This document shows, piece after piece, positions 5,083 through 62,766 of a stretch of 64,000 nucleotides of DNA; the stretch's first letter is position 1; each line of letters starts with the position of its first letter. This stretch comes from Bugula neritina (taxonomy: Eukaryota > Animalia > Bryozoa): NCBI GenBank assembly GCA_964035545.1, contig OZ037767.1:12819801-12883800 (forward strand). The letters run 5' to 3'. The translations under genes and the position numbers were made by a program. Below the pieces are notes generated by a model. That model was given only the letters and a program-made list of their open reading frames with translations, ran no database searches and was not told the origin of the DNA.

Positions 5083-5280
5083 ATATCTCAATTTGTGTAC
5101 AGCAGCTGTTTCAAGATTTGTCCCTTCATCAGCACAGAAAAGAGTACTATTGACAACAGCTTTGCAATGGTAAAAACTTATAGATTTATGAAAGCATGTT
5201 TAAAAAGTATGTAAAACCAAGCCAGAGAGCTCATGTGACTCTAGGGGTTACCTAAAAGTCACGAGCCTTGCTGAATGCTT
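5083..5280 (-). mobile_element. Diverged partial copy of the 272-nt hammerhead-containing repeat; HHR at 5092-5138
   Basis: Colinear with 18962-19155. The minus strand reads UCUGUG-CUGAUGA-AGGGACAAAUCUU-GAA-ACAGCUGCUGU-A-CACAAA. Its 3' end abuts a TA tract. Confidence 0.8.
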
Positions 5281-8500: not shown

Positions 8501-10965
8501 AAGTTTCTATTTTCAGTGAAATTTAAAACACATTTTACATGTTGTCTAAGTGTTCAAATCATTAAAAATCAAGCTTTTTTTTATTTAAAGTTAATGGCAC
8601 CTTTAATTAAATGTAAATATATAAATTTAAAGAAAAACTGAAAAATTTTTGAACTTGATTTTTTTGAGACAAATAAAAGCAATCTTAAAAAACTTACTTA
8701 CTTGAGTACAACTTGCGTTTTTGTAAATTTTAAAATAATAATAATTGCAAATTTTTATAATTTTGCTCAGCCTTGGAGCGTATCACGATGTTTATGAGAA
8801 CGGTTGTGATGGGAGAGAACAGTATGTGATGGCAGCAAGCGGTGACGACTTCTCCAAAGAGGTTGCAGGGAATGATTGGATGTTTTCTAAATGTTCTGTC
8901 AAATCATTTGATGCCTTCTTTACATCTTTAAACAGGTGAAGATATCAATGGGAGTCAATTAGTTTTTAATTAAATCAAATACTTAACTATGTTATTATTA
9001 CGCCAAAAGAAAGCATAATTGATTTAAGATTTTTCTTCTAAATTTTGAACAAAGTAGTATTGAGCAGACAATAGCTTAAATTTGTTAATATTTGATCTTC
9101 ACTCAAGTGAGAGAAGCAAACAAAGCATTTTATTTTCAAGTTCACTATAAGGAAGATGTCCCTGCATATGATATAAAATTGGTTAGCTGCAGCAACTAGG
9201 TTTTATTCGCTATACTAGTTTATATTCATATTTCGAAATGCTTATATATATATAGTGGATTCAGTAACTGCAACTCTATAAGACAAGGGCAATACTTGGA
9301 GACAATTCTGTTAGATTGTATCTGCTGTTACTCCAATAAGTATACTATTCCAATGCTAATAATCGAATATAACTTATACAATACTGTGATAATTTTATTA
9401 TTTGCCATTTTTTAGATTTGTAGCTATATGCATTCAATAGTAAAACATAATTAATATTTAGATGAACAAACAATAGTTTTTAAGTAATTTAATCTCACCG
9501 TATTATGATCAACTGTAAATTTAGCTGATAATAATCTGTTTTGTAAAAAAATTGCAGCAAGGATGAAAACTGTTTGCTTAATACTGGAAGGTATATTGAT
9601 ACATGGAGAGAAAACTCTCAACAAAAATTTGGACAATACGTAACATTACATGAACAATGCCGTTTATTTCACGGAGATAATTATTATTATATTGTATGTA
9701 TATGAAAAGAATATATATATATATATATATACTATACGATAATATTATTAAACACTACAATAATGTTTAATAAGTTCCACACAAAAATTAAATGTATAAG
9801 TAGTTTGAATTTAAAAAGTAAACATTGAAATATTGCTTTAAGCATATTATTATTCTGATCAAGTTAGCATATAAAAATCTGTTAAGAATAACTAAATAAA
9901 AGAATTGTGTACTTGAAGTAGACACTTATTTTGTAAAAATATTTCTTTGCATACTTGAGGTTCGAAGATTTCCAGACGTGTGCAGAGCTCTGTGGTGTAC
10001 TATGAATGGTAGAAATGCTTATACTAAACAGCCAGCTTTGCAGTACACTAGCTGTGGAATGAACAAGGTAAGACAACTACTAAAAATTTATGTAATTTAA
10101 GTAATAACAAAAATACTATTGAAATAACCTAAATCTAGTAATACACATAAATGTATGAGTCATACAGCATGTTTTCAAATCCTAAAATTGTGATATACAT
10201 AAAAAGAACAAAAGCCCATCTAATAAAATTTTACAAACTAGTAAATATTATGATGTTTTTATTGCAGTGGTGTGTAAAGGAAAAATGTGTGTTTGACGCT
10301 GTGGCACCGCAAATTGATGGTAAGAAAAATATTGCATCTAATATCAGATTTAATATTTTATTTTGTAAAACTGAAAAAAAAACTTAAAACTAACAATTAA
10401 CAAAACTAAAAGTTTTGTAAAAAAAATATATTTTAGCAGCCATGTTGAATCATTTAGTTTATGTATAATGAAAGCCCAAGACTTATACTTGAGTTTTAAA
10501 ATACTTTTAGCAAAGTGCCCAGCTGGAAATAAGCCAGGAAACTTTTTACTAAGTTCTCAAGTGATGAATTGCAAAACCGTTACATCTGAGGATTGCAACA
10601 GACATAATTTGGTACGACAATTATGCTGTAGCAGTTGCAAGAAATTTGCCACCCCTTGGCTTGGACCTGATTGCCCTTATGGAGACAAGAATCTGTTCCA
10701 TTCTATACACTCATATAAGAAAACCGTTTGTCCCGAAATTACTCTGTCACAATGCTCATACGATCCAGCTGTACAGACATCTTGCTGCCAAACATGCTGT
10801 GAGTTCAGCCGACCAGAGTTGCCTTTCACGTGTCTTGAAGAAGAATTTGTGACGACCACCTCTGAACTTCCAAATTCATTGGCTTCCTTCATCGACCCAT
10901 CTTTAACTTTAGTGTTGATATTGAATATCCAACAAGTTCTATTTATTGATATAATTTTTTTCTGA
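5599..10965 (+). CDS. Gene A: secreted, probably GPI-anchored MIG-17/ADAMTS-like M12B zinc metalloprotease (catalytic, disintegrin-like/Cys-rich, 2 PLAC-like modules), very short prodomain
   Basis: Phase-consistent exons: 5599-5668 (signal MEITRLVGIILSFSGLFFCLNHP), 6257-6425, 6853-6937, 7360-7455, 7691-7833, 8351-8482, 8771-8935, 9558-9693, 9960-10067, 10268-10319, 10511-10965. Zinc motif HELGHSLGAYHD, Met-turn QYVMA, CPYGD..CC..C modules and a hydrophobic C-terminus. Exon 1 is the least certain. Confidence 0.88.
6950..7156 (-). mobile_element. tRNA-derived SINE
   Basis: Minus strand has a GGGAGCCGCCGTGGTCTAAGCG head, a degenerate B box and the core GGCCATTGGTGATGTTAGAAAGAGCATCCAGTCATAATTGCTCCTGTGCC, shared with 12880-13068 and 35878-36080. 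Confidence 0.7.
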
Positions 10966-11688: not shown

Positions 11689-23827
<12,139 letters not shown>

Positions 23828-27203: not shown

Positions 27204-43247
<16,044 letters not shown>

Positions 43248-58533: not shown

Positions 58534-58581
<48 letters not shown>

Positions 58582-61500
58582 GTAGTGTGTTCAGATTGTT
58601 AATGATACATATATATTTTATTTAAAAAATCTTACACGACTATATAGTTTCGTGCAGTAAACTGCACTCCTCAGGTGTTAGACTAAAAATAAATAAAATC
58701 TATGAAGCATACCGATTATTCAAATTTTTACATAAAGAAAATTATCATGCTAAACACAACGTAAAACGAAATGCAAACATAGTAGTGGATTTGGTGTTAT
58801 CTATTAATTAATTAAATTGCTCTTTTTCTAAAGGATTAAACTATAAAAGCTAGATGTTTGATGGAAAGGCTAATTTATAATAGGTAGTACTATGGTTGAG
58901 AGTTGTTAGTATTGTTATGTGATGTTGCCCAGGTAGTGTTTACGCGCATGTCTGCATGTGGATAGAATTTCATTTCTGTTATTAAGGGAAGATTTGCTGG
59001 GCTGGTATATTATGAAATATTTTTCCCATAGGCAGAGGTTGCATCTTTTAGTGACTTTGTTGTATGAGTTGGTCTTTTTCATAATTTTCCATGTTATGTC
59101 AAAATGGGTGTTCTTGTCTTTTAGTTTCCAGATATATTTGCTCAATTCAGTATGGTTCTTTTTTGTTTTGTTGTTAAAAGTTGATTTGTGGTTATAAAAT
59201 CTGGTTTTGAATTCTGTTTCTGATGTTCCCACGTAAGTCTGGGGTTGGCTGCCATCTTTGGTTGTAACTGTAGCTTGGTATATGATGCACTTTGTGAGGC
59301 ATTTTCCATCTAGTGGGCACACTGTGCTGTTTCTGCAGTTACATTCTCGAGGAGGTTGGTTTGCTGGGTTGAGTAATCTTTTATTGTGGCTGTTGATTAT
59401 GTTGTTTAAATTTCTGCAGCAGCTGTAACTGAGTTTTATGTTGTTTTTGTTGAAAATTTTGTAGAGTTTGTGGTTTTTGGGTATTTCTTCCTCCAGAATT
59501 TTAAAAAATTGTTTTCCCAGGTTGCTTGATACACTTTTGGAGAATGGGGGGTTATACCATGTGATGTTTCGTCGTCTTTCCCTTTTTGGTCTGCTAGTGG
59601 TGTGTGTTGGCTGGAATGTTAGGTTATGTGTGTATCCACTTTTACTTAGAGCTTCTTGGTGTATTTTTGTTGTTTGACTGAAGACTTCTTCGTTAGATGA
59701 GAGATTGGAGAGCCTGTTGTTTATGGCTTGTGGGATGTTTCTTGTGATATGGGGTGGATGGTTGGATTTGGAGTTTACATATAGGATTTCGCTGTTAGGT
59801 TTTACATGGGGTTTGTGTGTTCTTTTGCTAATGTCAAAATTTATATCTAGATAGTTGACGACTTTTTTGTTTACTTCAATGGTGATATTTAGATTATGTT
59901 TTTGGAAAATTTTGCAGATTGATTTTTTAATTCTATCTATATTTTTTGCAGTGTCGTTGATTACTCCTAGGCCGTAAATAAATAAAATATATATGTATCA
60001 TTAACAATCTGAACACACTACATTATATTAGCTCTGTCACCCGTGATATCGAGCACTTTACTTTGCTGGAACTCCAACTAGATTGACAATCAGCATACAT
60101 TATTATTGCTCCTAGAACACAGCTCTGTGAATAGTTGAGCACTTTGAATTATTCAGCAAACATGGAACCCATCAGATTTGACTATTCCACCAAATGCATT
60201 CCGATACCATCTAACAAAGACTATATCGTAAAGCTCATAGAAAAAACCGAACAACTCCTAAAAAGAATGAGATGGAAAGCCTTCTTTTACCTAAATCCAA
60301 AGGCTAATTCAAACCAACAGGACAACTATGGATTCAACACCACAAAAGCACCTCCTACCATCAAAGAGCTTGCCAGGTTCGAAATAAAAATTAGATCCAT
60401 GATTAAAAACATCAAATTTAGAAGAGTACACTGCCAATTCCAGAAAACAATAAAACAAGACCTAGCCCAAAAAATTGGCACCAATAGTTTTATTATACCT
60501 GCTGACAAAACAAATAATTTTTACAATATGGAAATTACCAACTACAGAGAACTATTGCACAACAACATCACTAAGGATTACAAAAAAATTGATCAAAACA
60601 CGCCCCAAGAAATAAACCTAGAAGCTAAACATATTGCCAAATCTCTACAAATCGAAGACAGAATCACGACCACCAACACAACTGAGGCATACATAACACT
60701 AAAGGACCACAAGCCTAATTTTATGAATAACCCTAAGTGCAGACTAATAAACCCAAGCAAAACTGAAATAGGCATCATCAGCAAAAGAATACTAGACAGA
60801 ATAAATAAGGCCATAACTCCAAAACTAGCTTTGAATATTTGGACAAATACTTCCGAGGTAATTAAATGGTTCACAAACTTAGATAACAACAAATGCTTAT
60901 CTTTTATTGTATTTGACATTGTCGACTTTTATCCATCAATAACTAATAATTTACTCCACACTGCAATTGATTTCGCAGCAGAGCATACTACCATAACAGA
61001 CACAGACCGCACCGTGATTTTCCATGCCAGAAAAATGTTGTTATACCATTCCGGCCAACCCTGGAGTAAAAAATGTAGCTCATTATTTGACATTACAATG
61101 GGCAGCTATGACGGTGCAGAATGTTGCACTCTGGTCGGCATATTCTTACTATATAAAATCAACCAAAAGTTTGGAAATACCTTCGGTCTATACCGTGATG
61201 ACGGCCTAGGAGTAATCAACGACACTGCAAAAAATATAGATAGAATTAAAAAATCAATCTGCAAAATTTTCCAAAAACATAATCTAAATATCACCATTGA
61301 AGTAAACAAAAAAGTCGTCAACTATCTAGATATAAATTTTGACATTAGCAAAAGAACACACAAACCCCATGTAAAACCTAACAGCGAAATCCTATATGTA
61401 AACTCCAAATCCAACCATCCACCCCATATCACAAGAAACATCCCACAAGCCATAAACAACAGGCTCTCCAATCTCTCATCTAACGAAGAAGTCTTCAGTC

Positions 61501-62671
61501 AAACAACAAAAATACACCAAGAAGCTCTAAGTAAAAGTGGATACACACATAACCTAACATTCCAGCCAACACACACCACTAGCAGACCAAAAAGGGAAAG
61601 ACGACGAAACATCACATGGTATAACCCCCCATTCTCCAAAAGTGTATCAAGCAACCTGGGAAAACAATTTTTTAAAATTCTGGAGGAAGAAATACCCAAA
61701 AACCACAAACTCTACAAAATTTTCAACAAAAACAACATAAAACTCAGTTACAGCTGCTGCAGAAATTTAAACAACATAATCAACAGCCACAATAAAAGAT
61801 TACTCAACCCAGCAAACCAACCTCCTCGAGAATGTAACTGCAGAAACAGCACAGTGTGCCCACTAGATGGAAAATGCCTCACAAAGTGCATCATATACCA
61901 AGCTACAGTTACAACCAAAGATGGCAGCCAACCCCAGACTTACGTGGGAACATCAGAAACAGAATTCAAAACCAGATTTTATAACCACAAATCAACTTTT
62001 AACAACAAAACAAAAAAGAACCATACTGAATTGAGCAAATATATCTGGAAACTAAAAGACAAGAACACCCATTTTGACATAACATGGAAAATTATGAAAA
62101 AGACCAACTCATACAACAAAGTCACTAAAAGATGCAACCTCTGCCTATGGGAAAAATATTTCATAATATACCAGCCCAGCAAATCTTCCCTTAATAACAG
62201 AAATGAAATTCTATCCACATGCAGACATGCGCGTAAACACTACCTGGGCAACATCACATAACAATACTAACAACTCTCAACCATAGTACTACCTATTATA
62301 AATTAGCCTTTCCATCAAACATCTAGCTTTTATAGTTTAATCCTTTAGAAAAAGAGCAATTTAATTAATTAATAGATAACACCAAATCCACTACTATGTT
62401 TGCATTTCGTTTTACGTTGTGTTTAGCATGATAATTTTCTTTATGTAAAAATTTGAATAATCGGTATGCTTCATAGATTTTATTTATTTTTAGTCTAACA
62501 CCTGAGGAGTGCAGTTTACTGCACGAAACTATATAGTCGTGTAAGATTTTTTAAATAAAACATATATGTATCATTAACAATCTGAACACACTACATTATA
62601 TTAGCTCTGTCACCCGTGATATCGAGCACTTTACTTTGCTGGAACTCCAACTAGATTGACAATCAGCATAC

Positions 62672-62766
<95 letters not shown>

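Follow-up and report, generated by a model that had tools for sequence, protein, structure and literature searches.

Results

Elements at the locus

The DNA analysed here, hereafter the window, is a 64,000-nt stretch of the Bugula neritina contig OZ037767.1, and its relevant features are collected in Table 1. The largest element, a 4.1-kb insertion that we call family A, is a Hydra-clade PLE; the assignment is based on motifs, without placement in an RT tree among reference Hydra sequences. Hydra-clade PLEs have been described as units under 3 kb with a single ORF carrying RWK, DKT, CxCx5C and a C-terminal endonuclease, together with a hammerhead, (TA)n insertion, an inverted truncated copy and an optional tail (Craig et al. 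2021; PMC8557442). Family A matches this description in unit size (2573 nt), in its one ORF of 699 aa and its motifs, in its pLTR hammerhead and (TA)n target, and in having the inverted copy and the optional tail. The ORF and the alignment reveal RWK (R37 W38) and DKT (D115 K116 T117); the RT core reads YRDD, and the CxCx5C linker (C558, C560, C566) and, around the endonuclease region, a CxxC (C658, C661) and a CxH (C687, H689) are invariant in the alignment. In the C-terminal region, where the clade is expected to have a GIY-YIG endonuclease lacking CCHH, IIY...YVG, R605, E664 and N678 are conserved and strands are predicted. A Pfam search of the protein gave nothing significant, including for the GIY-YIG-type C-terminal domain, and a whole-chain Foldseek search returned polymerases only, with TERT structures as the best matches (E 1.8e-9). 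The ORF was also found in contigs from runs that we guess to be RNA, in which strand, level and ends could not be determined.

At 41.4 kb, the palindrome represents a truncated member of another Hydra family, autonomous and related to family A. This family B has 53% protein identity to family A and 80% identity over 86 nt of the 3′ UTR; as a fragment of such a family, the palindrome was rejected as a separate small non-autonomous one. The 272-nt repeat is a non-LTR retrozyme: it forms tandem arrays of up to four 271-nt units (300 exact anchor matches) and fulfils the criteria of a 170–400 nt tandem unit, absence of an ORF and one type I hammerhead per unit, although there are no data on self-cleavage or circular RNA. 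The first-pass annotation had spoken of three families sharing little other sequence, which holds for the retrozyme, unrelated outside the motif, and not for the two PLE families, which are relatives.

Table 1. Coordinates of features within the window. Sites 1 and 2 are the insertion ends before hairpins 1 and 2.
Feature	Position	Strand	Remarks
Older retrozyme copy	5083–5279	-	85% identical; ends at site 1
Degenerate hairpin 2 in older retrozyme copy	5266–5226	-	
Retrozyme, non-LTR	18960–19280	-	1.2 units of 271–272 nt repeat
Retrozyme hammerhead core	18986–19009	-	
Retrozyme hairpin 2	19103–19143	-	Pattern match, folding; no preceding AU-alternating tract
Retrozyme hairpin 1	19185–19228	-	Folding
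Family B, head-to-head pair of short 3′ fragments	41324–41615		
Family B hairpin 1	41366–41398	-	Pattern match, folding
Family B hammerhead core	41464–41489	-	
Family B hammerhead core	41528–41553	+	
(TA)n tract, left flank of family A insertion	58538–58579		
Family A inverted arm, 5′-truncated	58575–59975	-	Copy of 61201–62601; 1401 nt, 100% complementary
Hammerhead core within inverted arm	58648–58674	-	
Head-to-head inversion joint	59975–59979		Few bases inserted
Decoy tract	59987–59994	+	Perfect 8-nt AT-alternating tract, ~30 nt before site 1
Family A hairpin 1, internal pLTR copy	60031–60057	+	Pattern match, folding
Family A hairpin 2	60108–60143	+	Pattern match, folding; 18 nt before ATG
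Intact Hydra-clade PLE ORF	60162–62261	+	699 aa
Type I hammerhead ribozyme	62494–62546	+	Short palindromic helix III; structure read from sequence
Family A hammerhead core	62502–62528	+	Predicted cleavage after 62538; structure read from sequence
Family A hairpin 1, 3′ pLTR	62604–62630	+	Pattern match
(TA)n tract, right flank of family A	62674–62766		Site 2 junction 62676, 4 nt before would-be hairpin 2

A tandem pair of bulged hairpins

Between the hammerhead and the start codon lie two tandem copies of a motif, GCUC-stem-UH-GAGCACU. Its pattern matches the window six times against 0.04 expected, a number that none of 100 shuffles reached, and skips retrozyme hairpin 1 for its length only; this excess, together with a total of 817 matches where the reversed pattern gave 65, led us to reject a chance origin. 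Every hairpin folds with a 2-nt 3′ bulge (z from -1.4 to -5.2), as the first-pass annotation had proposed, and the positions that it gave for the three hairpins of family A, the two of the retrozyme and the one of family B were correct. Its spacing of 41–50 nt agrees with measured spacers of 50 and 41 nt, and the junctions at 58575, 62676, 18960, 5083 and 41615 indeed lie 2–4 nt before the GCTC of the read-through sequence. The second hairpin that it expected in longer family B copies is present in two loci (L070 and L076), 3–4 nt past the 41323 junction point and followed by the ATG of a Hydra-type ORF. Rfam gave no match at any hairpin with E up to 1; its only hits were sub-threshold miRNA models, on palindromes and TA tracts. 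We found no description of the hairpin pair in Rfam or in the literature searched.

Insertion ends at fixed and coupled sites

The sampled PLE 3′ ends in this genome lie 2–4 nt before hairpin 1 or hairpin 2. At site 2 of family A, 86 of 87 exact genome matches stop, read-through occurring only at the window copy of hairpin 2; at site 1, 53 of the 100 copies listed stop. The tail of family A is the 75 nt from site 1 (62601) to site 2 (62676) and contains the 3′ copy of hairpin 1. Its inverted arm has its 3′ end at site 1, 2 nt ahead of where hairpin 1 would start, and the family B palindrome likewise ends with site 2 near 41323 and site 1 at 41615. All 45 copies examined read through the decoy before site 1, a stronger (TA)n match that was never used, and the TATATA tract before site 1 of family B was unused in the fetched loci. 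Many copies are not inverted pairs; among inverted insertions, site 1 forms one end and not the other in 53 of 54 (26/27 and 27/27; p 2e-7 and 7e-9). The first-pass annotation considered the hairpins singly; they form a unit of two in tandem, and use of one site is coupled to use of the other. The counts of stops at each site and of read-through are pattern counts, since DNA-search queries ending at a junction bias the numbers; genome-wide junction classes depend on one diagnostic letter, with a full check only in the fetched loci.

Microhomology of 3–5 nt with TA was present at every junction. In other species, 25 of 29 ends fall 0–13 nt before a hairpin GCTC, 21 of them within 8 nt. Junctions are fixed next to the hairpins genome-wide here and also in other species, as the proposal had predicted. 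Some relatives are inserted next to microsatellites other than (TA)n, (ATTT)n and (TATC)n among them, for which there are no empty-site data; this leans towards pre-existing targets over flanks made by reiterative copying of the RNA tract.

Not every hairpin marks an end. The retrozyme in the window meets (TA)n 3 nt before its hairpin 1, but hairpin 2, although conserved, was read through in 100 of the 100 copies listed.

Conservation and covariation

Both hairpins were found in 36 of 62 Hydra-clade families and at least one in 55, many contigs being incomplete; a hammerhead core lies near the ORF ends in 52. Families with the tandem pair have 41–55% protein identity to family A and spacers of 33–64 nt (median 40), and in all families hairpin 2 precedes the ATG by 12–46 nt. 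Sequence was taken from 90 loci of this genome, whose further Hydra families are known through pattern matches only. Above the bulge of hairpin 1, the first pair is Watson–Crick in 40 of 40 cases (TA 23, CG 16, AT 1) against 19.6 after shuffling, the second and third pairs likewise score above every one of 10000 shuffles, and no comparable signal appears when the bulge is offset by 1 or 3 as a control. On the protein tree this first pair changed seven times, each time on both sides. A tool count gave 89.8% paired, which none of 500 shuffles matched and which slid controls (24–54%) did not approach. The upper stem thus covaries, an outcome on which the first-pass annotation had made its proposal depend; the four basal pairs have no covariation support because they are invariant. 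G-U exceeds A-C in the stem only modestly (18 against 8), and a reading at the DNA level is therefore not fully excluded. TA-like 4-mers precede 63 of 85 hairpins, compared with 13 of 128 control windows.

Hairpins in published retrozymes

Non-LTR retrozymes are tandem repeats of 170–400 nt with a type I hammerhead, for which PLEs have been proposed as the mobilising partner (Cervera and de la Pena 2020, PMC7229834; bioRxiv 10.64898/2026.07.22.740005). Ours has the same unit size and hammerhead, and neither publication names a shared cis signal. The published coral retrozyme Amil224 has both hairpins, unremarked in its publication, whereas the mussel and axolotl constructs do not; hairpins in the printed supplement sequences were judged by eye, neither folded nor aligned. 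This distribution points to a specific PLE clade as the partner of a subset of retrozymes. The first-pass annotation suggested that small RNAs borrow the hairpin; we consider it more likely that the retrozyme inherited the whole hammerhead-hairpin-hairpin module than that it borrowed a loose hairpin. On our reading, retrozymes that keep the module would be mobilised in trans by Hydra-clade proteins.

Discussion

The hairpin pair, conserved across a PLE clade and some retrozymes, is probably a signal for the start of RT, given that the hairpins lie just beyond both points at which copying starts; no binding or priming data are available. We observed directly the hairpin structure, its conservation and fixed 3′ ends just 5′ of each hairpin, and we infer the following steps. 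The protein would recognise the motif by its invariant GCUC/GAGC stem, its 2-nt bulge starting with U and its ACU tail, and would require of the upper stem only that it pairs. The GIY-YIG domain would cut within a (TA)n tract, and the 3′ end so released would pair with the short AU-alternating tract held 2–4 nt 5′ of the hairpin. The RT would then copy away from the hairpin, which leaves the hairpin itself uncopied. For this proposal, in which the tandem hairpins are the cis signal for template and start-site choice by the Hydra-clade protein, we estimate a probability of roughly 0.75. A signal located past the end that is copied requires a template RNA in tandem or circular form, and such a template would explain the pLTRs, the partial tandems and the hammerhead. 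The best reading of the PLE tail is that it results from two RT start sites set by the protein-bound hairpins, again in the absence of data on protein binding.

We are only a little more inclined to accept than to doubt the further inference that a single RNP, probably dimeric with each hairpin bound by its own subunit, may use site 1 for priming one target strand and site 2 for priming the opposite strand, and that the two cDNAs may join head to head via 1–4 nt of microhomology, so that the insertion is inverted and has the tail at just one of its ends. More speculative, and in our judgment somewhat short of an even chance, is a general programme of dual priming: a dimeric RT-endonuclease on two hairpins of one RNA would prime both strands at fixed sites, the cDNAs would serve as each other's second-strand templates, the hairpin pair would be the passport of a class of circular ribozyme RNAs, and equivalent paired signals would lie behind the tail in all endonuclease-bearing PLEs.

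Related arrangements are known from other retroelements. In LINE/SINE pairs with a shared 3′ stem-loop and in the R2 3′ UTR, an RNA structure common to non-autonomous partners is read by the element protein beside the priming site; there, each new insertion receives a copy of the signal, which is located 5′ of the start, whereas the Hydra-clade hairpins are paired, lie 3′ of the start and are left out. In L1 twin priming, both target strands prime on one RNA and the inversion is joined by microhomology, but L1 uses an arbitrary upstream position as its second site and yields arms without overlap, whereas in our elements the two sites are fixed and the 3′ end is present in each arm. In hepadnaviral epsilon, the bulge is the template for protein priming, and in telomerase the template boundary helix, located 5′ of the template, brings copying to a halt. 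Both analogies were drawn in the first-pass annotation, and they remain apt in that a bulged stem-loop or helix positions the RT, as we propose here; they need adjusting, as our hairpin is 3′ of the priming tract and uncopied at that end. Epsilon-like priming inside the bulge was not met, the ends mapping 2–4 nt 5′ of the stem and not to the bulge, and nothing here so far points to telomerase-type repeat synthesis.

An experimental parallel is Poseidon_Ac, whose RT starts in vitro at two internal RNA sites matching the genomic tail (Frangieh et al. 2024; PMC11167929). The reaction depended on RNA located 3′ of these sites, both strands were cut, and the protein was modelled as a dimer (PMC11167929). 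Two start sites bounding a tail, cutting of both strands, a dimer and a need for RNA 3′ of the start are features that we infer here as well; Poseidon_Ac primed without target homology (PMC11167929), whereas microhomology is inferred here. The earlier description of the Hydra clade (PMC8557442) includes neither the conserved hairpin pair, nor the position of the Hydra tail, nor the coupling of ends.

Among other explanations, a host or element nuclease might cut 5′ of each hairpin, the RT starting from the resulting RNA 3′ ends by ordinary TPRT. Fixed ends 5′ of the stem would give the same genomic picture and RNA ends are unmapped, but this model has to postulate a nuclease that is not known, does not on its own account for insertions with one end of each type, and differs from the Poseidon protein, which initiates internally on uncut RNA (PMC11167929); we regard it as improbable. 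We give still less weight to a DNA-level motif, an inverted repeat read by the GIY-YIG domain or a transcription factor that cuts or bounds the pLTR. The invariant sequence of basal stem and tail would suit it, as would the need of the Drosophila virilis Penelope endonuclease for tail sequence to recognise plasmid DNA (cited in PMC11167929); however, the half-sites are separated by 8–40 nt that include a covarying stem, the bulge is asymmetric and G-U pairs are tolerated, all of which is typical of RNA, and copies ending at site 1 have no hairpin at that end. Equally little weight attaches to cis control of translation or packaging, with the ends as a side effect of bound protein: the proximity of hairpin 2 to the ATG and its retention in the retrozyme without an end there fit this view, but ORF-less retrozymes keep both hairpins, and base-precise ends at both sites argue for active-site positioning. 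A second role of the hairpins, in translation, is compatible with the start-site signal that we favour. That ends fall passively at any AU-alternating tract able to pair with cut (TA)n, the hairpins being merely nearby, is scarcely credible and was rejected, for although it agrees with the microhomology at all junctions and with the disuse of retrozyme hairpin 2, which lacks such a tract, it is largely refuted by the longer, perfect decoy that 45 of 45 copies ignored, and by the unused TATATA of family B, the coupled ends and the end-to-hairpin offset retained in unrelated families.

The choice of template and start site by the RTs of PLEs, which are the nearest relatives of telomerase, is an open question; the tail, the head-to-head inversions and the animal retrozyme partner had been described without a mechanism. 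At 25–45 nt and nearly invariant over dozens of families, the motif offers a minimal substrate for binding, priming and cryo-EM studies, and it gives a means of assigning retrozymes to a PLE clade from sequence. If a movable hairpin sets the start site, it would also serve as a compact tag for cargo in TPRT into (TA)n.

The DNA pattern can also serve as an annotation marker. Prokaryotic genomes gave 119 background-like pattern matches (second pair Watson–Crick in 33/121) except for L228, a Hydra element that the pattern alone detected in an unrelated assembly, that of a bivalve symbiont, and that is most likely host DNA. Viral contigs gave no related protein; the hairpin pattern matched five times there.

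Results

The elements of the window belong to known kinds. The family A Penelope-like element (PLE) at 58575-62676 contains an intact 699-aa ORF, a pseudo-LTR-type repeat (pLTR), a type I hammerhead and an inverted arm of 1401 nt that is 100% complementary; alignment of its protein reveals the RWK, DKT and CxCx5C motifs by which the Hydra clade of PLEs is defined (PMC8557442), and telomerase RTs are the best matches to its predicted fold. This copy is 125 nt longer than one unit, and some family B copies span about two. The 41.4-kb palindrome consists of 3' fragments of family B paired head-to-head, and the protein encoded by full-length family B copies shares 53% identity with that of family A. 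The 271-272 nt repeat, whose units each carry a hammerhead and form short tandem arrays, meets the criteria for a non-LTR retrozyme; the hairpin motif (GCUC-stem-UH-GAGCACU) is the only sequence that it shares with families A and B.

The first-pass annotation had placed hairpins of one shape in these three elements, and every position that it claimed is indeed occupied by a hairpin whose fold has an upper stem set off from a basal stem of 4 bp by a 2-nt bulge on the 3' side. The second hairpin that it predicted past the 41323 junction point was found in full family B copies, with the ATG 19 nt further on. The hairpin pattern matched 6 times in the window (0.04 by chance) and 817 times in the 216-Mb genome, against 65 matches with the reversed pattern; Rfam contains no family at the hairpin positions of the window. 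In a third family of the genome, one hairpin directly precedes the ORF and the 3' half of another lies ahead of it; 7/8 genome matches to this family's hairpin pattern lie ~20 nt upstream of a Hydra ORF start. A further perfect hairpin variant (upper stem AATTTTC/GAAAATT) is present in three copies on one contig (G000 C1:12251491, 14571025, 35498350).

Relatives at 41-55% protein identity were gathered from metagenomes and assemblies and merged, where loci were near-identical, into 62 families. At least one hairpin was found within 200 nt upstream of the ATG in 55 of these families and two hairpins in 36, and those without two are mostly contigs cut short or rearranged in that region; as a control, the same search of the ORF interior gave 7 matches in 129 kb. 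The order hammerhead, hairpin 1, hairpin 2, ATG is invariant, with 33-64 nt between the hairpins and 12-46 nt from the end of hairpin 2 to the ATG. Among 92 hairpins, the bulge is TT, TC or TA in 90 and the 3' side is GAGCACT in 81. The pair is found in Watersipora subatra, a bryozoan, and a blind DNA pattern scan added one Hydra-clade PLE with both hairpins (L228:1351-1417) on a contig filed under a gill symbiont of Solemya, a bivalve, which is most likely host DNA inside a bacterial assembly. The covariance model that had been called for, trained on the hairpins of other species with the window sequences excluded, recovered the window hairpins as its five top matches, with the sixth at rank 7.

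Covariation of the upper stem, which had been named as a test, proved significant when base pairs were set from two anchors without folding. The first pair above the bulge of hairpin 1 was Watson-Crick in 40/40 cases (TA 23, CG 16, AT 1), against a mean of 19.6 and a maximum of 33 in shuffles; the second (28/39) and third (24/32) pairs, like the first, each exceeded all 10000 shuffles. Hairpin 2 gave the same signal at its second and third pairs, its first being almost always CG, and offsetting the bulge by 1 or 3 nt yielded no comparable pairing signal. When mapped onto a 34-family protein tree, from which six broken-frame families and those without hairpin 1 were left out, the first pair of hairpin 1 changes 7 times, with both partners changing every time. 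Across the alignment, 89.8% of cells were paired and covariation was 0.241 vs 0.106, while slid controls gave 24-54%. The four basal pairs do not vary, so that complementarity and stacking are their sole support. In hairpin 2, U stands opposite U at the second position above the bulge in 15/49 cases, chiefly in short loops; the two hairpins may not be fully equivalent.

Genome-wide, 3' junctions are tied to the hairpins, as had been predicted. Among the 87 family A copies that reach site 2, the end just 5' of hairpin 2, 86 stop at one and the same base, the single exception being the window's own pLTR-ORF junction. For site 1, just 5' of hairpin 1, 154 family A copies carry the preceding anchor; among the first 100 matches listed, 53 pass into (TA)n and 47 into hairpin 1. 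Exactly one site-1 end was present in 26/27 outward-facing inverted pairs of family A and 27/27 of family B, where independent choice of ends predicts about half. Family A inversion joints mostly show 1-4 nt microhomology or short insertions. In other species, 25/29 mappable 3' ends lie 0-13 nt upstream of a GCTC of either hairpin, 21/29 within 8 nt.

The claim that the hairpin marks the insertion end held for families A and B and for hairpin 1 of the retrozyme, before which 81/100 of the matches listed stop, the remainder being read-throughs, but not for retrozyme hairpin 2. The latter was read through in 100/100 of the matches listed; this pattern is blind to junctions further upstream, and none was seen in the fetched loci. 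No AU-alternating tract precedes it. Conversely, a perfect 8-nt AT-alternating decoy tract (59987..59994), 30 nt upstream of family A site 1, was read through in 45/45 copies, so the site is not set by microhomology alone. Since retrozyme hairpin 2, lacking the tract, is no stop and the decoy tract is unused, the start requires both hairpin and tract. Short retrozyme fragments in the TA tract adjoining family B ends (L068, L083, L088), all of which end at site 1, represent nested use of the same targets.

Discussion

The hairpins form a conserved, covarying pair, and element ends are fixed just 5' of each and coupled within one insertion. We infer that each hairpin is bound by the PLE protein, which would keep the neighbouring AU tract placed on a (TA)n end opened by a cut; copying would then proceed away from the hairpin. 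A single RNP may prime one target strand at each of the two sites, and the resulting cDNAs would be joined head to head. An invariant basal sequence below an upper stem that is free to vary matches the expectation for a protein-read RNA site, although we have no binding data. Because copying at an end leaves out the signal that defines it, a competent template must exceed one unit; it might be a tandem transcript or a hammerhead-made circle, and circular templates have been proposed for copies of more than one unit (PMC4209133). Ends at the hairpins might instead reflect RNA cleavage there, for which RNA-end data are lacking, or recognition of the motif at the DNA level, and the hairpins might have a translational role. 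The bypass of the decoy tract all but rules out passive microhomology.

It has long been known that one end of inverted pLTRs may be extended by a tail of 30-40 nt (PMC3846280; PMC8557442). In vitro, a Poseidon element uses two internal RT start sites, matching the tail; both strands are cut, RNA 3' of the start sites is required and a dimer is predicted (PMC11167929). The hairpin pair opens a long-standing question to direct test in an assay that already exists. In the Poseidon_Ac consensus (PMC11167929 file S1), a hairpin is discernible by eye at nt 121-148 (5-bp basal stem, 3-nt 3' bulge, 4-bp upper stem), starting 3 nt past the reported +111-118 start region; its sequence is unlike the Hydra-clade motif, and it is possibly an analogue in another clade.

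PLEs have been proposed as both movers and ancestors of retrozymes (PMC7229834; bioRxiv 10.64898/2026.07.22.740005). By eye, the published sequence of the coral retrozyme construct Amil224, whose self-cleavage was shown in its source paper, has both hairpins 3' of the hammerhead and an AT-alternating tract ahead of the first; its authors remarked only that a central region is conserved among corals. The hairpins are absent, by eye, from the published mussel and axolotl constructs. None of the papers cited here describes the hairpin pair, and a literature search that did not extend to subscription journals and Repbase reports found no other that does. In the literature searched, the pair appears to be undescribed, as do its tie to the two ends and the fact that some retrozymes carry it.

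Other features of the window

Other features of the window, with positions and strand
Feature	Position	Strand	Remarks
Ty3/Gypsy LTR retrotransposon, intact-looking	27981-35063	-	terminal repeats identical over at least 300 nt
gag-like ORF of the Ty3/Gypsy element	33811-34713	-	
pol ORF of the Ty3/Gypsy element	28736-33664	-	
Inverted arms flanking the family B insertion	40945-41324 and 41632-42011		380 nt, 96%, TA-rich centre
Three paralogous exons with cysteine-rich repeats	10468-10965, 23138-23827, 39138-40658		
Inverted repeat pair	1726-2008 and 12071-12353		283 nt, 87% complementary, 10 kb apart

No env was seen in the Ty3/Gypsy element. The arms around the family B insertion look like a fold-back element serving as target. 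The paralogous exons, whose cysteine-rich repeats we take to resemble ShK domains and two of which are followed by long Thr-rich stalks, probably encode membrane mucins. A 24-nt antisense match (92%) links the family A 3' UTR (58809-58845) with the stretch before family B site 1 (41585-41621), and an additional match to a hammerhead-core-like pattern lies at 20045-20069 (+).
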